DNA of 64,000 nucleotides. It comes from Prasinococcaceae sp. CCMP 1430 (Eukaryota; Plantae; Prasinodermophyta). The notes beneath the pieces are model-generated. The model did not search any database and was not told the DNA's origin. It saw only the letters and a list, made by a program, of their open reading frames with translations. The DNA lies in the NCBI GenBank assembly GCA_013416795.1, contig RQSC01000010.1, positions 211,949 to 275,948 on the forward strand, read 5' to 3'. Shown here piece by piece: positions 1-57,764 of the stretch (position 1 is the first letter of the stretch; each line of letters begins with the position of its first letter). The position numbers and the translations under genes were made by a program.

Positions 1-206
1 ACGGCGGTGCCACGCCGCGCGCCGATTTGCCCAGGGTGAAATTGCCGCTGCGGGGTCCCCTCGCGAGTGGTGCGCTTGTGCGCTCCCACGGTCTCTCGCA
101 GTCGTTTACGACGGCGAGGGCGACCGGGGGCGACATTCTGACGGCCACGGAGCGCCATGCGGGGCGAGTGCAGCAGGGCGCGCGCGCGGTGCGAGGCTCG
201 GCGCAG

Positions 207-3200
207 ATGGTGCGCTCGACGAGCATGGAGCACACAAACACTGCCTTCGACAACGACTGCGACTCGATGGGCGATTGCGACGACGCGCAGGTTGTACTGG
301 GCGTGTGCGCGCTGAGCAAAAAGGCGCGCTCAAAGCAGATGACGAAGATCCTCGAGCGGCTCACCAACTTTGGCGAGTTCACGGTGAACATCTTTGGCGA
401 CGAAACCATCCTCGAGGAGCCCGTCGAAGCGTGGCCGATTTGCGACTGCCTCATCAGTTTCTTCTCGGAAGGGTTCCCGCTCGAGAAGGCCGAGGCGTAC
501 GCGAGGCTGCGCAGGCCCTTCCTGGTCAATGACCTGGCAATGCAGCACGACGTGTTGGATAGAAGGCGTGTGTACGGCGTCCTCAAGGGCGCTGGCATTC
601 CCGCACCGCCACACATTGTCGCGAGCCGCGACTCGCCCGACTGGGACGAGTCTGACTTTGAAGAGACCGAGGACTCGGTGCGCATCGGCGACGGCAAACG
701 CATCATGAAGCCCTTCGTGGAGAAGCCGGTGAGCGGTGAGGACCACAACGTGTACATATACTTCCCGCCGAGCGCCGGAGGCGGCTGCAAAAAGCTCTTC
801 CGCAAGAAGAACGACAGGTCGTCAGAGTACTTTCCCGACATCAACAGCGTGCGGCGCGACGGACAGAGCTACATCTACGAGGCGTTTTTGCCAACTGGCG
901 GCACGGACGTGAAAGTATATACACTGGGGCCATACTACGCGCACGCAGAGGCGCGCAAGTCGCCCGTCGTAGACGGCAGGGTACTGCGAACCGCCGATGG
1001 CAAGGAGGTGCGCTTTCCCGTCTTACTCAACCCCTTTGAAAAAGAGATAGCGCGCGCAGTCACCTTGGCTTTTGCGCAAATGGTGTGTGGATTCGACCTG
1101 CTGCGTTCGAATGGGCGATCGTACGTGTGCGACGTCAACGGCTGGTCATTCGTCAAGAGCTCCGACAAGTACTACGACGACGCGGCGGGCATTCTGCGGG
1201 CGATGATGCTAGCTGCGGTCGCGCCGCAGAAGCTGACACGCAGGCCATACCCGATCATGCCGCGCAACGGCTCGGACAACTCTATCGCGGGCGGTGGCGA
1301 CGGGTCCGCATCGGACGATGGGACATCCGCCACCGACGGAGGCGACGCCCCTGGTGGCGCGGTGGACGAGCTTCCAGGCAAGGGTAGCAAGCATCAAGAG
1401 CTGCGCTGCGTCCTTGCGGTGATTCGCCACGGCGATCGCACACCCAAGCAGAAGATGAAGATGACCACGCGCCATCCTAAGCTGCTCAAGCTGCTCAAGA
1501 GGCACGGAGGCAAGCGCGGCGAGGCGAAGCTCAAGGCCCCGCATCAGCTTGAGGAGCTCCTGGAGGTCGTGCACGAGCTGATCGCCGAGAAGCGCGCCAG
1601 GCAGTCCAACCGCAGGCGCGGAGACCCAGAGTCGGACTCGGACACCGGTGAGGACACCGACATGCCCATGCGAAAGCTGCAACACCTGTGCTTTGTGCTT
1701 GAGCAGGGTGGGCACTTCAGCGGCATCAATCGGAAAGTTCAGTTGAAGCCACTGAGCTGGTCGACCGAACCAGAGAGCGACTCGAGCTCCGCAGGGGACA
1801 ACGTGACCGCAGACGGGTCCAGCTCAGCGGCCCCGAGCACGCCGCGCAGCGGCGACACGCCACGTGCCGGCGCAAATGGCGGCGGGGATGCACCACGCGG
1901 GCGCTGCACGGAGGCGCTGCTCGTGCTAAAGCACGGCGGGGTGCTGACACCTAAGGGGCGCGCGCAGGCGGAGTTCGCTGGCCGCGCGTTCCGCAGCGCT
2001 ATGTACCCGACAGAAGGGCCCGATGGCGGAGGTCTCTTGCGCTTGCACTCGACGTACAGACACGACCTCAAGATCTATTCGTCCGACGAGGGGCGAGTTC
2101 AGATGAGCGCCGCTGCGTTCGTGCAGGGCCTGTTGGACCTCGAGGGCCGGTCGCTGACACCGATCCTGGTATCGCTGGTGAAGAAGGATGCCAGCATGCT
2201 CGATGCCTTTGGCAAGAGCACCTGCGAAAAGATCGCTGCGGCGAAGGCACTGCTGTATGACCATCTCACTCAAAGCAATGCGCCCGACGCAACAGGCGAG
2301 ACCTGGAGCCACTGCGATTGGCGCATGGAGAATGAAGCCAACAACGAGGGTCGCCGCGTGCCCCGACGCAGCTCGTTCTCTCACGTTGGCCCTGTGGACC
2401 GCCTTCCGCCGAACTCCGTCGAGTTGCTGCACCGTCTCGCATCGGAGCTGAACGCACTGGTGTCGTGCCTTGAGGTGCTCGAGGCGTCCGTTGAGAATCC
2501 ACACGGCACCGTGGCGTTTGGGGGCGCTGCAAGCGTGCCCGAGAGGGCGAGCATGCCTGCGCCGCAGGCTACCACCGCTGGTATGGATGCCGCGAGCTCC
2601 GACAACATCGCCATCGAGGCCAGCGACACCTCGCCCGGCCTCTTGGGAGACATGAGCAGCGACGCGCACGCAAGCGGTTCGCCCACCGGGCGTAGCCCCA
2701 TGCCCTTGCAGCGCAGCGGGGACAGCGGCCCCTTCTCTGACTATGATCGGAGTCGCAGGGGAGAGAGCCTGCTGCTGGTTCACACGCGCTGGTCGAAGCT
2801 ATACAACGACTTCTACTCAGAGAGGAAGGGCACTTTCAATCTGAGCAAGGTCCCCGACGTGTACGACATGTCGAGGTACGATCTCATGCACACCTCCGAC
2901 CTTTTCGACGACACATTCGTGGCGATCCTACGCAGGGTCCTGGCCACGGTCAAGGTGCTGGCGGATTGCGTCATACCGCATGAGTATGGAGTCACGCCGC
3001 CTCAGAAGCTGTCAATCGCGTCGGACATCTCGAAGCTCCTGATGGGGAAGCTGGTGGCAGATATGCTCAACACGCGCGGCGAGAGTCTGGCGATGACCAT
3101 GCCGCGAGCTCAGGCGAATGAGCGCGGAAGTGCGACCGAATTTGGCGATTTCGCTCCCACCGCGGATGCTACGTACGGGGAAGATTCGGGCGACATGGGT

Positions 3201-4073
3201 ACGCACAGCAATCCCGACGGAGCGGAGGGGGCGCGCTCTGACTCGTCGCTGCGGAAGATTCGCACCTCGTCGTCGCTCGGGACCTCACCGGGTACGGCCA
3301 TGGGAGTGTCGACCTCCGCCCAAGTGTCATCACAGCGCTCTCGCGGGCGCACGAGCAGCGCCACCCGACTCGCCGAGGCCGACGAGGAGGACGAGGAGCT
3401 GGACATCGATGATGGCCAAGATGACGTAGTGGAGAGTGGTGAGATAGGCGAGGACGATGCCACAGTCGACCACAGGCTCAACTTGAAGTATGCTGTCAAC
3501 ATCAGCACACCCGCGCGCCACGTCCGCTCGCGCATATACTTTACGTCGGAGTCGCACGTGCACGCGCTGGTCAACGTGCTGCGCTTCGCGGAGACCGAGG
3601 AGGGCGTGCCGCTGCTCACTCAAGAGGCGCGGCAGATACTCGCCGACACGGACCAGTTGGACTATCTCACCCACATCGTCTTCAGGCTGTTTGAGGACAT
3701 GGATGCGCCAATCAACGAACCCGGACGTTTCCGCCTACAGATCATGTTCAGCTCTGGCGCGGAGGGTCCGAGAGAGAGCGCCGGCGAGGACGACGAAATG
3801 CCGGATCCCGTGCGCCCTTTGGTTGAACTTCCACTGGAGAGCACAGAGGAGGGTGACTTCGTCAAGCATTTGGCCACGCTGGAGGACTTCATCAAGCTGG
3901 TCGAGCCCCACCAGACGCCGTGGAAGAACAAGCGGACCAAGGCACAATGGGCACGCGGGAAGCGCAGTCCTTCCTTCTACAATTTGTTTGGTGCAGGCTC
4001 GGGACGATATCCTACGAGCAGAGCCTTCATGCTCGATGCCAGCTTCTCACGCGCTGCCGGCGGGCGCTCCTAG
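207..4073 (+). CDS. PPIP5K: Bifunctional inositol hexakisphosphate/diphosphoinositol pentakisphosphate kinase-phosphatase (PPIP5K/VIP1/VIH family), nuclear
   Basis: ATP-grasp kinase motifs GVCALSKKARSK, SGEDHNVYIY, DVKVYT..AHAEARKSPVVDG and GFDLLRS...VCDVNGWSFVK. Histidine acid phosphatase motifs RHGDRTP, RHDLKIYSSDEGRVQ and FTSESHVH. The frame is open from a TTG at 27; the first ATG is at 207, so the true start is uncertain. Confidence 0.93.
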   Translation: MVRSTSMEHTNTAFDNDCDSMGDCDDAQVVLGVCALSKKARSKQMTKILERLTNFGEFTVNIFGDETILEEPVEAWPICDCLISFFSEGFPLEKAEAYARLRRPFLVNDLAMQHDVLDRRRVYGVLKGAGIPAPPHIVASRDSPDWDESDFEETEDSVRIGDGKRIMKPFVEKPVSGEDHNVYIYFPPSAGGGCKKLFRKKNDRSSEYFPDINSVRRDGQSYIYEAFLPTGGTDVKVYTLGPYYAHAEARKSPVVDGRVLRTADGKEVRFPVLLNPFEKEIARAVTLAFAQMVCGFDLLRSNGRSYVCDVNGWSFVKSSDKYYDDAAGILRAMMLAAVAPQKLTRRPYPIMPRNGSDNSIAGGGDGSASDDGTSATDGGDAPGGAVDELPGKGSKHQELRCVLAVIRHGDRTPKQKMKMTTRHPKLLKLLKRHGGKRGEAKLKAPHQLEELLEVVHELIAEKRARQSNRRRGDPESDSDTGEDTDMPMRKLQHLCFVLEQGGHFSGINRKVQLKPLSWSTEPESDSSSAGDNVTADGSSSAAPSTPRSGDTPRAGANGGGDAPRGRCTEALLVLKHGGVLTPKGRAQAEFAGRAFRSAMYPTEGPDGGGLLRLHSTYRHDLKIYSSDEGRVQMSAAAFVQGLLDLEGRSLTPILVSLVKKDASMLDAFGKSTCEKIAAAKALLYDHLTQSNAPDATGETWSHCDWRMENEANNEGRRVPRRSSFSHVGPVDRLPPNSVELLHRLASELNALVSCLEVLEASVENPHGTVAFGGAASVPERASMPAPQATTAGMDAASSDNIAIEASDTSPGLLGDMSSDAHASGSPTGRSPMPLQRSGDSGPFSDYDRSRRGESLLLVHTRWSKLYNDFYSERKGTFNLSKVPDVYDMSRYDLMHTSDLFDDTFVAILRRVLATVKVLADCVIPHEYGVTPPQKLSIASDISKLLMGKLVADMLNTRGESLAMTMPRAQANERGSATEFGDFAPTADATYGEDSGDMGTHSNPDGAEGARSDSSLRKIRTSSSLGTSPGTAMGVSTSAQVSSQRSRGRTSSATRLAEADEEDEELDIDDGQDDVVESGEIGEDDATVDHRLNLKYAVNISTPARHVRSRIYFTSESHVHALVNVLRFAETEEGVPLLTQEARQILADTDQLDYLTHIVFRLFEDMDAPINEPGRFRLQIMFSSGAEGPRESAGEDDEMPDPVRPLVELPLESTEEGDFVKHLATLEDFIKLVEPHQTPWKNKRTKAQWARGKRSPSFYNLFGAGSGRYPTSRAFMLDASFSRAAGGRS

Positions 4074-4129
4074 CTTCGCACTCGTCGCCCTGATGGTACA
4101 GTACATATTAATTATTATCGCCAGGCCCT

Positions 4130-5542
4130 TCAGAGCCCGTTCGAGCGCTCGGGCCCGTCCGAGCGATGGCGCTTGTGTTTTGTGTGAGAGTTCCCCTCGC
4201 TTGGGCCCTCATGGTCGTCCCACAGGAGATAGCGGATGAGCGGGGTGAGCACCGCCACACTTAGGCTGTTGCCAAGAAGAGCATACCGCTGCTTCAGTGT
4301 CACCCTATCGGGGAAGCCAAACGAGGGCGGGAAGGAGTGCAAGCTGGCCACCTCACGCGGCGTGAAGTAGCGCGCGCGCAGCGCGATCAGGTCGGCAACC
4401 GTTTGCTCCGCCATTTCCGACCTGCTGCCTACGGTGGGGTACACGCTTGCATCGACTGGTCCCTCCACGCGGCTCCACGCGTGGTCTCCCCAGCGGACGT
4501 CGTGGCGGCTGCCGCGAGTCACAAGCACCGAGCCTGTGCCCTTGGCATACTTGTAGTAGTTTTTGGTGAAGCAGCACGTCTTGGTGTCATCGGCGTCTAC
4601 CAGATCGATCACCACACCATGCTTGCGCAGCGTCGCTTCGCTCACGTACGTGAAGTCGGACGCGATGGGCGCGTCCCCATTCTCCAGGTAGTCAGACAGC
4701 GGTCGCACCCGCATGCCATCCGCGTCTATGCCGGCGCCAGCCGCATCACCAGCCCGCACACCGCCGAGCGTATGCCACGGCGGCTGCGGCGGCGGGCCCG
4801 ACTGCCAAACGCCGAACGCGTGCTCCCCCTCCTCTGCGTGCCCGGCCGCCTCTGGCTCTGCCTCCGCCTGGACTTGCTTCTGCGCGTACGCGTGCGCGCA
4901 CGGGTGCGCAGCAAAGGCGTGTCCCTTTGCCACGCGCTTCGCGAGGACGAAGTAACGCGGGCGCGAGTATGGGACGCCAACCTCGAGCGGGCTGAGCATA
5001 GCACCCTGCGCGGCGTAGCCCGTGTCGCGCAGGGCGGAGAGCAGCGCGGCGTGCGTCTCGCTCGTTTCGAAGCCGCACACGTTCTCGACCAGGATGTGCG
5101 TGGGCGGAGCCTTCATCTCGCGGAGCCTCTCCAGGAGGTCAAGGAAGCTTGCTGCGCGCCCATCGGCCGTGTCGCGTTTGAGACCTTGGCGCGTGTAGGG
5201 CTGGCAGGGAGGCGACATGAGCCACAAGGATGCGCCCAGCGCATCAAGCTGCTGCGCGCTGAGGGCCTGCACGTTGCCCTCCTTCGGCCGCTCGCCGAAG
5301 TTGTGCGCGTACGTTTCGCACGCGTGCGGGTTGAGGTCAAATGCGCGCACGCGCACGCGCGGTCTCGCCGGCGCGCTGCAGCTCCCACTCCCGCCTTGTA
5401 CGCCGCTCTCGGGCGGCAGCGCGTCGAGCAGCGCGTAGTGCAGGCCGCCGACGCCGCAGTAGAACTCGGCCGCCGTCAGCAACGTCTCGTCGCTGCCGCC
5501 GCCGCCGCCGCCGCTGCCGTCATCCCCTCGTCCACGACCCAT
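4130..5542 (-). CDS. DNMT2: DNMT2/TRDMT1 tRNA (cytosine-38-C5)-methyltransferase, nuclear
   Basis: C5-MTase motifs in order: EFYCGVGG (I), SPPCQPYTRQG (IV), ENV (VI), SRPRYF (VIII), RYFTPREVASLHSFP (IX), LLGNSLSV (X). Also the DNMT2-diagnostic CFTKNYYKY..GTGS. Confidence 0.93.
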   Translation of the reverse strand: MGRGRGDDGSGGGGGGSDETLLTAAEFYCGVGGLHYALLDALPPESGVQGGSGSCSAPARPRVRVRAFDLNPHACETYAHNFGERPKEGNVQALSAQQLDALGASLWLMSPPCQPYTRQGLKRDTADGRAASFLDLLERLREMKAPPTHILVENVCGFETSETHAALLSALRDTGYAAQGAMLSPLEVGVPYSRPRYFVLAKRVAKGHAFAAHPCAHAYAQKQVQAEAEPEAAGHAEEGEHAFGVWQSGPPPQPPWHTLGGVRAGDAAGAGIDADGMRVRPLSDYLENGDAPIASDFTYVSEATLRKHGVVIDLVDADDTKTCCFTKNYYKYAKGTGSVLVTRGSRHDVRWGDHAWSRVEGPVDASVYPTVGSRSEMAEQTVADLIALRARYFTPREVASLHSFPPSFGFPDRVTLKQRYALLGNSLSVAVLTPLIRYLLWDDHEGPSEGNSHTKHKRHRSDGPERSNGL

Positions 5543-6172
5543 GCCACCTCACCAACCGCACTCAACCCTCGCCCCCCCGCCCGCGCGCGCGCCCGCACGC
5601 GCTGTGACCCCCTACGCCCTTGGCGCCCTCCCCTCCCACCCACCCACCCTCACTCCGCCCGCCCATGCGGCGTGTGGGGCGCGCTGCCGCCGCGCTGGTG
5701 GCGCGGCTGCCGGCGGCCGCGCGGCGTCACACGTCACGTGCGCACATCAAACTGCACTGGGACTGTCCGTGCGCGCGGGGATGCCTCCCAACACACCGCA
5801 CAATCAAAAAAGCATTTAAGCGAAGCCCTAATCATAAACCTCAAACATGCTAGTACCACAAGGAACAAAGCTCAAACAGATGACACCCTCTTACAACGCA
5901 GAACCTGAACCCCCCGCGCCCGTGCCAGCCCAGCCAGCGGCAGCGCCCGCGTTGGGCCACGCGCGCTCCACCCGCCAGGCAGAGCGCTGTCTGGGTGCCT
6001 GGCTGTCTGGCTGGCTGTGGGCTGCTCGCGCGAGGGGCCGATGGGCGGCGCGCCGGCGGGCCCAGCCGCGGATGGGATGCGGCCGCGGTGGCGCGCGTAT
6101 TTTAGATAACTCAACCATTATTTTTCATTCTTACCTTGTAGCTATATAAAACTTAAAATTTTTAAGGTTTTA

Positions 6173-29737: not shown

Positions 29738-30553
29738 TTATTTGTTCATTAATAAATTTTTGGCAAATTGAAATGGAGATTTATATGGAGTCTCTAAATT
29801 AATTAAAGCTTCATCCATACCTAATAAACGCTGTGCTGCGTTTTCCATAGCTAAACCAGACAGCGTTAAGCGTTTACGACTAACTAACGGCTTTCCTCGG
29901 TTAGTTGCAACAATAACTTGATTATCTTCTGGAATAACTCCTAATAAAGGAATACCTAATAAATCTTGAACATCATTAATTGCAAGCATATTATTACCTT
30001 TAATCATATCTGTACGAACACGATTAATAATTAATTTATTATCGAATAAATTATTCGCTTCTAATAAACCAATCACACGGTCAGCATCACGAATAGCAGT
30101 AATTTCGGGAGTTGTAATTAAAATTGCTTCACTCGCGGGTGAAATAGCATTTAGAAATCCAATATCAATTCCTGCGGGACAATCAATCAAAATAAAATTA
30201 TAATCACGTTCTTGTAATGAATCAACAAGCATCGTCATACTTGAACGACTAATATTATAACGTTGACGGGTTTTTGAGATGGCTAACAATGATAAATTTG
30301 ACCATGTTTTATCTTTTACTAAGGCCTGTTCTAAAGTACAATTTTCATTAAAAACATCCATTGCAGTAAAAACAATACGTTTTTCCAAACCTAATAATAA
30401 ATCGAGATTACGTAAACCAATATCCGCATCTAATAAAACTACACGTTGTCCTAGTCGAGCAAGGGACATTCCAATATTTGCAGTTAAAGTTGTTTTACCT
30501 ACACCACCTTTTCCAGATGTAACAACAATAACTCGAGTTTTTTGTTCTTTCAT
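29738..30553 (-). CDS. minD: Septum site-determining ATPase MinD
   Basis: TSGKGGVGKTT, DADIGLRNLDLLLGLE, IDCPAGI, PEITAIRDADRV; C-terminal amphipathic helix PFQFAKNLL. Confidence 0.97.
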   Translation of the reverse strand: MKEQKTRVIVVTSGKGGVGKTTLTANIGMSLARLGQRVVLLDADIGLRNLDLLLGLEKRIVFTAMDVFNENCTLEQALVKDKTWSNLSLLAISKTRQRYNISRSSMTMLVDSLQERDYNFILIDCPAGIDIGFLNAISPASEAILITTPEITAIRDADRVIGLLEANNLFDNKLIINRVRTDMIKGNNMLAINDVQDLLGIPLLGVIPEDNQVIVATNRGKPLVSRKRLTLSGLAMENAAQRLLGMDEALINLETPYKSPFQFAKNLLMNK

Positions 30554-30567
30554 AAACTATATTAAAT

Positions 30568-31734
30568 TTAAATAGAGATAACTTTTTTTTCTTTTTGGGG
30601 TAACACGGGTCGGCTATTTTCATAAAATAACCTTACACTTAAACTAAAGAGACAAATACAAGCTAATTGAGCATTTCCACCATAACTAACGAAAGGTAAA
30701 GGAATGCCGGTAATTGGTAATAAATTGCATGTTACACCTAAATGTATACATGTTTGAAGAATTAAAAAAAGGAAACAACCAAGTGTAATTATTACATCAG
30801 GTTTTTTTATTAATTTTATGAAATTTGATAGATAAAAACTAGTATAAACTGATAAAAAAAGAAAAAAAAACATACTACCAAATATTCCAAAATTTTCTAA
30901 AAAAACAGAAAAAATAAAATCCGCATAATAAACAGGTAATGATTCAAAGGTTGTTTGTCCACAACCGATCCCTAAGCCAAAAAACCCACCTCGAATAATG
31001 GTTTCAAAACTTTGATTAAGTTGTGTTATATTCATATTAGTTGATTCACTACCTAACGTTTGAATAAATGAAATAATCCGATTAAGTTGATACGGATGCA
31101 AAAAGATATTGAATAAAATAAAACTTAAACAAAATCCTATACCTAATATTAAATGTTTATACGAAAGTTGTTGTAAAAAAATAATAATAAATAAAATACT
31201 GAGATATAATAAGCCTGATGCAAAATCAGGTTGTAAAAAAATCCCTAAAAATGTACCAAGGGTAATTAAACCTAAAAAAACGAATTCTTTATACTTTAAT
31301 TCTGTCGTTTTTGTTAAAAGTTGACTTAAACATAAAAGGAAAAATGGTTTTTCAATTTCAACGGGCTGGTATAAAAGTGGTCCTATTTCAACCCAACGAC
31401 GGGCACCATTAATAGAAAAATTTGTTAGTAGTGTATAATTAATGGCTAATAAATTTATAGTTGTTCCTATTTTCCCAATTAAAAAAAAATATCTTTTTTT
31501 CATTTTGAACAATGCTATAATAATTACAAAACTTAAGATCGTCCAACAAAATTGTTTTTTTATAAAAAATAAACTATTTTTATAAATTACAGCGGATGGA
31601 AAACCAGTTGTACTATAAAGGATAAATAAACCAAAAGTAATCCAAAAAAGATAAATCCAAATTAACCAATACAGTGAAACTGAAGTGGATTGAAGGACTA
31701 ATTGATAATGTAGTAATTGTTTTTGTATTTTCAA
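30568..31734 (-). CDS. ftsW: SEDS-family peptidoglycan glycosyltransferase FtsW
   Basis: Multi-TM protein with NGARRW...QPVE..K, QPDF, PYQ..RI, QS...I.RGG..G.G.G, LP...ADFIF and LLP.TG.PLPFVSYGG. The called start is TTG and is uncertain. Confidence 0.93.
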   Translation of the reverse strand: MKIQKQLLHYQLVLQSTSVSLYWLIWIYLFWITFGLFILYSTTGFPSAVIYKNSLFFIKKQFCWTILSFVIIIALFKMKKRYFFLIGKIGTTINLLAINYTLLTNFSINGARRWVEIGPLLYQPVEIEKPFFLLCLSQLLTKTTELKYKEFVFLGLITLGTFLGIFLQPDFASGLLYLSILFIIIFLQQLSYKHLILGIGFCLSFILFNIFLHPYQLNRIISFIQTLGSESTNMNITQLNQSFETIIRGGFFGLGIGCGQTTFESLPVYYADFIFSVFLENFGIFGSMFFFLFLSVYTSFYLSNFIKLIKKPDVIITLGCFLFLILQTCIHLGVTCNLLPITGIPLPFVSYGGNAQLACICLFSLSVRLFYENSRPVLPQKEKKVISI

Positions 31735-52245: not shown

Positions 52246-52350
52246 TTTTTTATATTATTTTCTTATCAAATTTTATGTAGAAAACTTTATTTGAGTCTTT
52301 TTTTTTGTTATACTATATTTAGAGAAGTATTAAATTACTTCTCTAAAGAT

Positions 52351-52422
52351 GCCACGGTCGCCTAAGGGATGGGCATCAACCTTCTAAGTTGTCGTGTGTA
52401 GGTTCGAATCCTATCCGTGGTA
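52351..52422 (+). tRNA. trnR: tRNA-Arg(UCU)
   Basis: GCCACGG/CCGTGGT acceptor stem, CTTCTAA loop, GGTTCGAATCC. Confidence 0.88.
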
Positions 52423-52435
52423 ATGCTTTTTTATA

Positions 52436-52465
52436 TTGGACGTTTTGAATATTTTATGGTATAAT
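52436..52465 (+). promoter_or_regulatory. Promoter for trnH and possibly the downstream orf122-ftsI unit
   Basis: TTGGAC-18 nt-TATAAT with a TG extension. Confidence 0.55.
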
Positions 52466-52482
52466 AAAAGTATAAATAAAGT

Positions 52483-52558
52483 GGCGGGCGTCGCCAAGTG
52501 GTAAGGCAATGGATTGTGACTCCATTATTCGCGGGTTCGATCCCCGTCGTTCGCCCCA
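52483..52558 (+). tRNA. trnH: tRNA-His(GUG) with encoded G-1 and apparent encoded CCA
   Basis: G-GCGGGCG...TTGTGAC loop...CGTTCGC-C-CCA. Confidence 0.95.
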
Positions 52559-52584
52559 TTTTCGTTGTTTTTTTTTGTATTAAT

Positions 52585-52953
52585 ATGAAAAGAATTTTTT
52601 TTTTCAATTCGTTTTATTATTTACAATTAATATCTATTATTATTTTGATCAGTAGTTTATTTACGTGTAAACTTTATATAAGTAGTCAAACGCAAATTAA
52701 AAAAGCCTATTTACGATTAGAAACGCTTAATCATTATTCACATTTTTTAATGCTTGAAGCTAATTTAGTTGAATTTAAGAATTTAAATATGTCTAAAGCT
52801 AGTAATTTATATTCTTTTTATTGGGCTGAGTATAACACGATTCCCTTATTACCCGTATCTGAGAAAACTACTAAACCTTTTAGCAGCTTAACAAAAGATT
52901 TTGACCGAACTCATAATCAATATTCAATGTATGTATGGCCGCTATTTAATTAA
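52585..52953 (+). CDS. orf122: single-pass membrane coiled-coil protein, candidate FtsL-like divisome subunit
   Basis: ATG 26 nt after trnH (the ORF-track GTG start lies inside the tRNA). Short N-tail, hydrophobic segment at about residues 11-32, heptad-patterned region, LMLEAN motif. Ends 50 bp before ftsI on the same strand. Confidence 0.6.
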   Translation: MKRIFFFNSFYYLQLISIIILISSLFTCKLYISSQTQIKKAYLRLETLNHYSHFLMLEANLVEFKNLNMSKASNLYSFYWAEYNTIPLLPVSEKTTKPFSSLTKDFDRTHNQYSMYVWPLFN

Positions 52954-53003
52954 TAAAGTAATTTGTAATGTTAAAGTAAATAAAAAAATTTCTACTCATT
53001 ATT

Positions 53004-54680
53004 ATGAGGACTATTTTTTATAATCGCTTTCAATTTTTATCGTATTTTTTTTTTTCTTGTTATCTAATAATTGTTTTTCGTCTTTTTAGTCTTACTTTTT
53101 TTTCGAAATTAACACAACAAATTTCTCAACCATCTGGGTTACCTAAAAAAGCTTTCTCTCGTCGTATTATCTGTGATACTTATAAAATTCCTTTGGCTTT
53201 TGATCAATCGACGTATGATATTTATGTATATCCAGCGGCAGCGAATGGACATTTTTTAGAAATTAGTCGTAAATTAGCACCGGTTTTGGAATGTCAACCA
53301 TTAGCTTTATATGATTTTTTATCACGTCAATCTAATTATACGCCACTAATTTTTAATCTACATCCCAATAAAGCGCAACGTATTAAAGCCTATAACGTTC
53401 CAGGTATTGATATTTTAGTTAAGTCTTCTCGTATTTACCCTTATAAAGAATTAGTAGCTAATTGTATTGGTTATGTTAATTCAACTAATCAAGGTTTATC
53501 AGGGATTGAACAAAGTTGTAATTTTATTGTCCAAAATATAAGTTCAGTTTCAAATTATTCGATTATTTCAAATTTAGTTTGGTTACAGACCTCTTTGGAT
53601 ATTCGTTTACAACGTCAATTTTCTTCCATTTTAAAGGAAGGCTTAGAATTAGTGTCTGCAAAGCGTGGTCTAGGTGTTGTATTAGATTGTTATTCTGGTG
53701 CGATTAAAGCTTTAAGTATTTTCCCTCAGTTTAACCCATATAAGTACACAGAAACCCCTATGGCTATTTTAAATCCATGGCCAATTTTAGAATTGTATGA
53801 ACCCGGTTCTACTTTTAAACCTATTAATTTAGCCATTGCTTTAGAATCAAATGTTATTAATTCGAAAACAGTAATAGTGGATGAAGGGTGTATTAAAACA
53901 AAAAGTTCATATTTTTTTAATGCTACTTCTTCTCAAGAACAATTTATTCGTTCACAACCAAATATTTTAACATTAGAAACCTTAGTGGCTCGTTCTAGTA
54001 ATATTGGTTTAATTCATATTATGAGTCGATTAAGTCCTTTAGTGTATTATAAGTGGTTAAAGTATTTAAATATTTCACCTTTGAACTCGTTTAATATGAA
54101 TTTACCTTATGAAAATCACGTAAATTTACCATTTCAAAGAGAATTTATTAAAACACCAGAAACAGCTTTATTTTTTGCTTTAGGGCATGGTTTTTCATTA
54201 ACCCCATTTCAGTTACTTCATATTTATACAAGCTTATTTAATCAGGGAAAACCAGTACAACCATTTTTAGTTAAAAAATTTGTATTAGCTCCTAATACTT
54301 TTTTAAAGACTTCTTCAAATTTGGACCAACAAAGTTTCCACGATCAAAATCGGGTATTCTCAGTACGTACCTGTGGGTTTTTATTGCGTTTATTAGAAGA
54401 AGTAATTGAATATGGAACAGCTCAAAAAGGAGCATTTTCAGATTATCGTTTAGCGGGTAAGACTGGAACTTCTGTTTATACTTTACAAAGCAAACGTCGT
54501 TTAACTAGTTTTTTAATTGCTTATCCATCCCCGAGTCCCCAATATATTTGTTTCTTATTACTGGACTTAGATCCACGATCAAATCAACAAAGTTCGACGA
54601 CAGCGGTACCTTTACTTAAAGCACTTTTAGATATTTTAGTTCAAATTTCCTGTCTTTCCCCGGTACTATCTGCTAAATAA
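53004..54680 (+). CDS. ftsI: Class B penicillin-binding protein (peptidoglycan transpeptidase) FtsI
   Basis: N-terminal TM; RRIICD..K.PLA, RIYP....A..IGY, G.SGIE and SLD.RLQ pedestal motifs; catalytic STFK (53808-53819), SSN (53994-54002) and KTG (54459-54467). Confidence 0.94.
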
Positions 54681-56549: not shown

Positions 56550-57764
56550 TTATTTTACATTTGGTTTATTTGGGTAATATATTTTTGTTGGAAATGAACT
56601 CATATATTTTTCTGGACGAGTCATTGTTTCCTGTAAAAATTGAGCATTTAATAAAGATGTTTTTGTTTTTACTTCAGGAAGAAAATATGAGAATTTTAGG
56701 AATCCAGCATGAGTTTTAGATTCATAAAACTTTTTAACTGCATAACTACGTCCTTCACTCAAACTTTTATTTTTAGAATCTTGCGAGTTATCTGTTTGTC
56801 CTTGACGGTCATATAAATATAATACACGAACGAAACCATTTAACCACATCGGTTTACTCGCACGTGAGTTTTGATGCCAAATACGGCTCGAATTTGTACG
56901 AACTGGGTTATCAGCATAAATATTATATAATTGACCATTAATTAGTGGATAAATATTTTGTAACTCTTCACGTTTCTTTTCAAATTTGGACCCAGTTTTT
57001 CGATTTTGTTTTACTGTTGTCCATGGGTTTGATTGGCGTTTCTTTAACATATAAAGTTTAACTTTTCTATAAGGCATTAAACGTGATAAAGATTTTCCAA
57101 CTTTTCTTTCAGGTTTTGGTTTATATAAATTTTTTGGTGTAAAGAAAAATGTATGACTACTACGCCATGGGTAACGTCCAAAAGTATAAAGTAATAAACT
57201 AATACTTAAGATACGAATTCCAAGTTCAATATTTTTCAGAATACTTGTTGAACTTAACATTGGGAATAATACATTAATAAATTCACTCCCTAAAAGCAGT
57301 ATGATATTAAAAGAATAATTAATAATAAAGCCACTACCTGCAATTTGTAAAAATGTTATAATGTTAGCTTCATTTGTATTCGTTAAAAATAGAAAACGCG
57401 AGCTTTCTAAAAAAACCATTGGATTTGCTAATGTTAAGAATCCAAATAATAATAGATTTTCTATTCCTTTAGTAATAGAAAAAGTATTTTGTTTTTGTAG
57501 GGGTTGTTTTAGAATATATCCACAAACAATAAGACTTAATAAAAATAAAATAGGTAAAGATTGTAACCAAGACTCTAAAAAAGGGACCCAACCAAGGGAA
57601 ACACTTAGATATAATAAGATTTGACTACAAGCAATTCCAATATAACAGAAAATTACTTGTGTTGAGCCAATAATAAAACTATAATAAAGGGCTAATAACC
57701 CAATAATCGAGATTGGACTCGTTAAATAAATATTGCTGAAAATAATTTCAATTGGGTTTATCAT
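56550..57764 (-). CDS. ycf1: Compact Ycf1 (TIC214-like)
   Basis: Multi-TM N-terminal half with ALYYSF, SQILLYLS, LANPMVF and LLYTFGRYP segments matching the Ycf1 TM-domain pattern by eye; basic soluble C-terminal half. Confidence 0.68.
   Translation of the reverse strand: MINPIEIIFSNIYLTSPISIIGLLALYYSFIIGSTQVIFCYIGIACSQILLYLSVSLGWVPFLESWLQSLPILFLLSLIVCGYILKQPLQKQNTFSITKGIENLLLFGFLTLANPMVFLESSRFLFLTNTNEANIITFLQIAGSGFIINYSFNIILLLGSEFINVLFPMLSSTSILKNIELGIRILSISLLLYTFGRYPWRSSHTFFFTPKNLYKPKPERKVGKSLSRLMPYRKVKLYMLKKRQSNPWTTVKQNRKTGSKFEKKREELQNIYPLINGQLYNIYADNPVRTNSSRIWHQNSRASKPMWLNGFVRVLYLYDRQGQTDNSQDSKNKSLSEGRSYAVKKFYESKTHAGFLKFSYFLPEVKTKTSLLNAQFLQETMTRPEKYMSSFPTKIYYPNKPNVK

Follow-up and report, generated by a model that had tools for sequence, protein, structure and literature searches.

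Early-branching green algae still divide their plastids with the help of peptidoglycan enzymes, and, to our knowledge, nothing that regulates the FtsW-FtsI synthase has so far been reported from a plastid. The locus analysed here raises the question of whether a chloroplast genome encodes FtsL: a small reading frame, orf122, lies just upstream of ftsI in a 64,000-nucleotide stretch of DNA (hereafter the window) from Prasinococcaceae sp. CCMP 1430, and the original prediction had taken it for a plastid-encoded FtsL in a relic ftsL-ftsI operon. If this is true, orf122 would be the first FtsL in an organelle genome.

orf122 is a conserved plastid gene

From about position 6100 on, the window consists of plastid DNA of about 30% G+C carrying psaA, chlB, psbEFLJ and rps4. 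Positions 1-6100 have 62-70% G+C and many overlapping ORFs, and the abrupt switch at about 6100, which contains no Ns and leads into plastid DNA opening with trnS-GCU, reflects either a chimeric assembly that joins nuclear to plastid DNA or the recent insertion of a very large piece of plastid DNA into the nuclear genome. The orf122 region is also present, at 100% identity, in a TARA contig of 72 kb (L090), in line with a genuine plastome of about 75 kb. Downstream of rps4 lies an ORF of 404 aa (56550-57764, minus strand) that has several hydrophobic segments; a gene is called at the matching place in the metagenome contig L001.

The candidate plastid ftsL occupies positions 52585-52953 of the plus strand, from an ATG at 52585 to the end of the stop codon at 52953 (122 codons plus stop), in agreement with the coordinates first given for it. 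A longer, GTG-started frame proposed by the ORF finder overlaps trnH, and the start was placed at 52585 because every homologue starts at the same Met. The frame is preceded at 26 bp by trnH-GUG (52484-52558, detected with ARAGORN) and followed at 50 bp by ftsI, all three on the plus strand, and trnR-UCU (52350-52423, also plus strand and from ARAGORN) bounds the trnH-orf cassette on the left, a border that is conserved. The ftsI gene (53004-54680, plus strand) encodes a class B penicillin-binding protein of 558 aa with Pfam PBP_dimer and Transpeptidase domains; outside plastids it is closest to cyanobacterial FtsI proteins, the best named matches being about 32% identical, and an FtsI cluster 82% identical to it includes a Prasinoderma coloniale GenBank protein, which points to a related prasinococcalean or prasinodermophyte alga as the source of the window. 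FtsI is longer in marine relatives (611-627 aa; L003:6001-7884, L006:3596-5431) than in the window.

Intact members of the orf122 family were found in five diverged plastid lineages, with 51-70% identity to orf122 (alignment A3). Besides near-identical copies, they comprise a P. coloniale-type copy (L008), 70% identical and directly 5' of ftsI, a 175-aa form (P0124, from L009) and two 91-aa forms, 51-55% identical, from the marine contigs L003 and L006. Conservation extends over residues 1-88 and includes 33 invariant columns; the tail varies. Nei-Gojobori dN/dS values for the five lineages were 0.13-0.46, and no pair exceeded 0.48. Comparisons against the P. coloniale-type copy gave 0.13-0.16, and the 91-aa pair gave 0.29, at dS values of about 0.5-1.5, which are near saturation; ftsI gave 0.11-0.26 in the same comparisons. 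Neutral evolution, which would have counted against the original prediction, thus gives way to purifying selection.

These data also bear on the explanation that orf122 is an open frame that arose by chance in an AT-rich spacer, or else a pseudogene in decay. Long ORFs are no rarity at the 27% G+C of this region, no nr or UniRef record was found in the four clusters of the family, and the published account of this group's plastomes accepted an ORF as a gene only if its function was known or it had a recognised domain (PMC4194372), which is why orf122 is effectively unannotated. Chance would nevertheless have to account for a frame that has stayed intact at such divergence, under such dN/dS values, with its 33 invariant columns and a start position common to all copies. 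The dN/dS values therefore exclude a chance ORF, and we rejected this explanation, which is so improbable as to be effectively refuted. orf122 is a real, conserved gene, and it adds one unannotated conserved gene to the plastomes of Prasinococcales/Prasinodermophyta. In contig L001 (8859 bp, coverage 2.4), chlB, ftsI and the ORF copy P0003 are each split or frameshifted, and these breaks are most likely sequencing errors, not signs of pseudogenes.

Expression was assessed from contigs of marine metatranscriptome libraries, which covered positions 52350-52827 and 52596-52804 with 0 mismatches and positions 52951-53428 with two. Their depths were 5-25, close to those of ftsI and well under that of psbE, for which 158 is reached in run X4. 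These depths fit a weakly expressed gene; however, DNA carry-over is possible, so that the contigs, while covering orf122 at ftsI-like depth, do not prove its transcription, nor do they speak against the expression that the original prediction requires.

Gene order was then compared among loci. The trnH-GUG gene is linked to the ORF in all four loci with upstream DNA (the window, L003, L006 and L091). In the window, trnR, trnH, the ORF and ftsI follow one another on a single strand, and the ORF and ftsI are arranged in the same way in L008. The contiguous order in L003, L006 and L007 is ftsW, minD, trnR-UCU, the ORF with trnH on the opposite strand, and ftsI, the trnH-orf cassette between trnR-UCU and ftsI being inverted relative to the window (L003:5328-5822, L006:2756-3406, L091:8-700). 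A syntenic ORF thus exists in close relatives, co-oriented with ftsI in L008 and inverted in L003 and L006: linkage of the ORF to division genes is conserved, whereas co-orientation with ftsI is not. This inversion means that an operon with ftsI is not obligatory and that co-transcription is not conserved. Adjacency to ftsI has been kept, as the idea of a relic ftsL-ftsI operon implied, but to speak of an operon goes too far.

In the window, the ftsW-minD pair lies on the minus strand at 29738-31734 (Pfam FTSW_RODA_SPOVE, 1.9e-57; ParA/CbiA, MinD-type), and its products are presumed partners in the septal machinery of the plastid. The pair is 21 kb away from orf122 there, and sits directly beside trnH-orf-ftsI in L003 and L006. 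A promoter-like sequence, TGGACG-17-TATAAT with an extended -10 TG, was noticed just upstream of trnH at 52437-52465 and could drive a trnH-orf122-ftsI transcript; the scan of the orf122 region for promoters and terminators gave 7 matches versus 5.3 expected, which is the background rate.

Predicted architecture of the protein

The N-terminal tail of orf122 is limited to M-K-R and is followed by the single hydrophobic segment of the protein, roughly residues 4-32. The best 19-residue hydrophobicity windows begin at residues 4-16 (Kyte-Doolittle values of 1.6-2.0), and a single transmembrane (TM) helix is predicted at about residues 4-30 (52594-52674), where the AlphaFold2 model has pLDDT values of 80-94. 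With K2 and R3 on the N-terminal side of this helix, the protein is predicted to have its N-terminus in the stroma and its C-terminus outside.

A juxtamembrane heptad helix, residues 31-66 (52675-52782), is indicated by hhalign, hmmsearch, AlphaFold2 and a heptad scan, and constitutes the part of the protein that aligns to a cyanobacterial family described below (SQ.Q...Y..LE.L motif). The a/d register noted originally (I38/L45/A59 and A41/L48/L55/V62/M69) turned out to be the best of the seven, with hydrophobic residues at 9 of 12 positions. AlphaFold2 modelled residues 2-66 as one continuous helix (pLDDT 74-94), followed by a low-confidence short helix at residues 73-83 and a disordered tail. 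Within the heptad helix, the stretch H53-F-L-M-L-E-A-N60 (52741-52764) has H53, F54, L55 and E58 invariant in alignment A3.

A second conserved block, L-Y-x-F-Y-W-x-E-Y, spans residues 75-83 (52807-52833) and coincides with the short helix of the model; L75, Y76, F78, Y79, W80, E82 and Y83 are invariant in A3, and the block may be a partner-binding element. The remainder (52834-52950) is a variable C-terminal tail, predicted to be disordered (pLDDT below 50 at residues 89-122), which is reduced to 6 residues after the block in the 91-aa homologues and is longer in P0124.

Relation to cyanobacterial and bacterial proteins encoded upstream of ftsI

Scans of orf122 against Pfam and NCBIfam gave no family match. 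An exhaustive HMMER search of 1.84 billion representatives and a word-indexed search recovered nothing beyond this family, which makes up four clusters in all; the HMMER search gave three of its own clusters and no bridge to other families, and a metagenome scan with the family alignment yielded just two loci, both of already-known variants. In a sequence profile search of the PDB, only chance matches appeared (NOMPC and a nucleosidase for alignment A2, "fantom" for A5, the cyanobacterial family), and the best score in the ESM Atlas was 0.67, below the usable range. The AlphaFold2 models had no meaningful Foldseek match in the PDB or in the AFDB clusters, which is unsurprising for a single long helix. 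The lack of matches in curated families, the few clusters, all from this algal group, and the blank ESM Atlas and Foldseek results would suit a small membrane protein that is peculiar to Prasinococcales/Prasinodermophyta and has an origin other than FtsL, such as an envelope or thylakoid assembly factor. Adjacency to ftsI and weak resemblance to cyanobacterial proteins would then reflect chance plus a shared design of a TM helix followed by an amphipathic helix; in keeping with this, the cassette moves with trnH and, in sister lineages, points the other way with respect to ftsI. We regard such an origin as less likely than descent from FtsL but as its main rival, to be weighed against the following comparisons.

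Cyanobacterial loci were collected with an FtsI alignment scan of one genome per prokaryotic species, which gave 26 usable loci (L010-L035). Of these, 22 encode a bitopic protein of 150-230 aa immediately 5' of ftsI and in the same orientation (family A5; for example L017:2369-2887 and L026:1891-2460). These proteins consist of a basic disordered tail, one TM helix, a conserved helix (..Y.Q..W...Y..LE.LQ..E.QL...), and a C-terminal part with a GL..P.P...IFL..AP motif and a terminal PLGY. AlphaFold2 produced for a member of the family one helix at residues 59-126 (pLDDT 95-98). At least 508 relatives were found in the databases, none of them with a Pfam domain; those bearing a name are called "hypothetical", a handful of obvious misnames aside. 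Pfam and NCBIfam models failed to recognise the A5 proteins except for two marginal TIGR02209 matches.

As a reference, the proteins encoded upstream of ftsI in 24 non-cyanobacterial loci were assembled (A6), 18 of which match Pfam DivIC and 13 Pfam FtsL. Alignment of A5 with A6 by hhalign gave a probability of 72% and an E-value of 3.3e-5 over 54 columns, covering the helix and the LGM..P/GL..P strand. Moreover, when an HMM of the A6 FtsL proteins was run on the 2321 six-frame ORFs of the cyanobacterial loci, the upstream ORF of L026 came first (E 1.1e-6), and eight further cyanobacterial upstream ORFs were among the top 14. On the grounds of this profile alignment and this ranking, we conclude that the cyanobacterial family probably represents a divergent FtsL. 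A widespread cyanobacterial "hypothetical protein" encoded 5' of ftsI is FtsL-like, contradicting reviews according to which cyanobacteria have neither FtsL nor FtsB (PMC7766704, PMC4748335).

The original prediction had also pointed to a resemblance between orf122 and the cyanobacterial membrane protein upstream of ftsI, and this is where significant similarity was obtained. By hhalign, residues 25-56 of orf122 correspond to residues 80-111 of the L017 protein, directly after its TM helix (P 0.005-0.009), a score reached by 0 of 250 full column shuffles of the plastid alignment and by 5 of 250 that preserved the TM segment. Cyanobacterial HMMs were then run on 655 six-frame stop-to-stop ORFs of the window, L003, L006, L008 and L009. 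orf122 ranked first with both the 21-sequence HMM (E 0.025) and the 141-sequence HMM (13.7 bits, E 0.0016), and ranks 2-4 were in both cases taken by three of its four homologues, the next ORF appearing at E 1.2 with the larger HMM; the fourth homologue, P0124, does not stand out in these searches. None of 5000 full and 5000 TM-preserving shuffles of orf122 scored above 8.4 bits, and the reversed sequence scored 1.6 bits. Among 4478 ORFs from bacterial loci none reached 13.7 bits, and the best of them, at 12.5 bits, was a genuine FtsL.

The kinship of orf122 to the A5 family is thus weak but significant against several nulls, over a match of some 30-50 residues, part of which are hydrophobic. 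The reciprocal search with the plastid HMM produced no enrichment among cyanobacterial ORFs, probably because the five-sequence plastid profile has a Neff of 1.4-1.7; this result is the one that a lineage-specific protein would predict. Such a protein is harder to reconcile with a frame specified beforehand coming first among the 655 ORFs with its homologues next, and outscoring all 10,000 composition-matched decoys, TM-preserving ones included, as well as the bacterial ORFs. Helix boundaries and register also agree between the two proteins, residues 2-66 in the plastid model against 59-126 in the cyanobacterial one, with an alignment offset of 55. Finally, ftsW, minD, trnR, trnH, the ORF and ftsI have stayed together even after the inversion, which likewise argues against chance adjacency.

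Direct comparison with bacterial FtsL was less informative. Neither Pfam FtsL, DivIC and FtsL_2 (PF04999, PF04977) nor TIGR02209 matched orf122 even at an E-value of 10, so that the search against PF04999 and TIGR02209 suggested with the original prediction came back empty. The plastid family aligned by hhalign to the 24 genuine FtsL proteins with P 0.04, and with P 0.29 when E. coli FtsL was placed as the first row, neither of them significant, and an HMM of bacterial FtsL put orf122 8th among plastid ORFs (E 3.3), without singling it out. This failure of the direct comparison is a further point in favour of a lineage-specific protein. The proposal of a plastid-encoded FtsL accordingly stands through its link with the cyanobacterial family, but not through direct similarity to FtsL, and the C-terminal module of FtsL is unrecognisable in orf122.

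The protein with which orf122 had been compared by eye is as it was described: in the E. coli genome (NC_000913) FtsL (b0083) is a 121-aa protein encoded directly 5' of ftsI and containing R82-N-L-I-L-E-E-N89. In E. coli this segment is the FtsWI-activating region (AWI/CCD), about 25 residues after the TM helix. Chaining the two profile alignments (orf122 residue number plus 55 gives that of L017, and L017 minus 26 that of E. coli) places H53-N60 of orf122 on R82-N89, the same register as in the pairing of LMLEAN with LILEEN made by eye, and the direct hhalign alignment, itself insignificant, also pairs L55 with E. coli L84. The LxLE residues are not kept in the cyanobacterial A5 proteins, and the resemblance to the E. 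coli motif is therefore consistent but not probative, and maybe coincidental. The C-terminal segment of FtsL (RIE..A..LGM..P), which joins FtsB and FtsQ in bacteria, has no alignable counterpart in orf122, the hhalign and hmmsearch alignments stopping before that region.

Because FtsL and FtsB/DivIC have one architecture in common, orf122 might instead derive from the paralogous FtsB/DivIC partner. Pfam DivIC matches the genuine ftsI-upstream FtsL proteins of A6 more often than Pfam FtsL does, and the short N-terminal tail of orf122 is more like that of E. coli FtsB. What marks ftsL, both in E. coli and across the bacterial loci analysed here, is nevertheless its position 5' of ftsI, and the sole significant match of orf122 is to a cyanobacterial protein in that very position, which makes descent from FtsB/DivIC improbable.

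Proposed role and comparison with known systems

We consider it fairly probable that orf122 is a plastid FtsL in minimal form, working with the plastid FtsW and FtsI, and that it came down with ftsI from the cyanobacterial ancestor. The gene would be a strongly reduced plastid descendant of the cyanobacterial gene immediately upstream of ftsI, itself putatively a divergent FtsL. The protein is predicted to be type II bitopic, its three-residue stromal tail being followed by a TM helix that runs into the heptad helix of about 35 residues, which would lie on the intermembrane-space side, and then by the short aromatic block and the variable tail. In bacteria, the TM and juxtamembrane helix of FtsL contacts FtsW and FtsI. 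By analogy with the FtsWIQLB complex, that of orf122 would be located at the inner envelope, where it may pack against the TM helix and pedestal of FtsI and against FtsW, and could, as the chloroplast divides, stabilise or activate the plastid-encoded synthase of septal peptidoglycan, FtsW-FtsI.

Neither an FtsQ-like nor an FtsB-like ORF was found in the window. If the proposal is true, a TM helix and about 35 juxtamembrane residues, devoid of the FtsQ/FtsB-binding part, suffice to partner the synthase, and a plastid FtsL cut down to its membrane-proximal helix would show which part is essential for FtsWI where FtsQ, FtsB and FtsN are apparently absent. We lean, if only slightly, towards the full picture in which a chloroplast encodes a minimal FtsL along with FtsW and FtsI, cyanobacteria have an FtsL in its canonical position, and the FtsL-FtsI pair survived primary endosymbiosis.

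In its likeness to bacterial FtsL (PF04999, TIGR02209; E. coli b0083), orf122 combines a gene directly 5' of ftsI, a length of about 120 aa, a predicted bitopic, N-in topology with a TM helix running into a heptad helix, and an L-x-L-E-x-N stretch in register with E. coli R82-N89. It differs in being organelle-encoded, in its three-residue tail on the cytoplasmic side, in giving no significant direct sequence or profile match, and in lacking a recognisable RIE..A..LGM..P segment. FtsB/DivIC, whose gene is not beside ftsI, is a small bitopic protein like orf122, as is CyDiv (All2320), and both are late-divisome proteins with a coiled coil. No sequence match of orf122 to FtsB/DivIC (PF04977) or CyDiv was found; the latter is restricted to filamentous cyanobacteria and is inserted the opposite way round, through a C-terminal TM segment (PMC4748335). 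The cyanobacterial A5 proteins have a basic disordered N-terminal tail of 60-100 residues and a C-terminal GL..P.P...IFL..AP....PLGY module, both of which the plastid proteins lack, the module being absent from all five sequences. In position 5' of ftsI, in the TM helix with the juxtamembrane motif Y.SQ.Q...Y..LE.L after it, and in the single continuous helix of about 65 residues predicted by the models, orf122 resembles this family, the only one to which it has a significant match.
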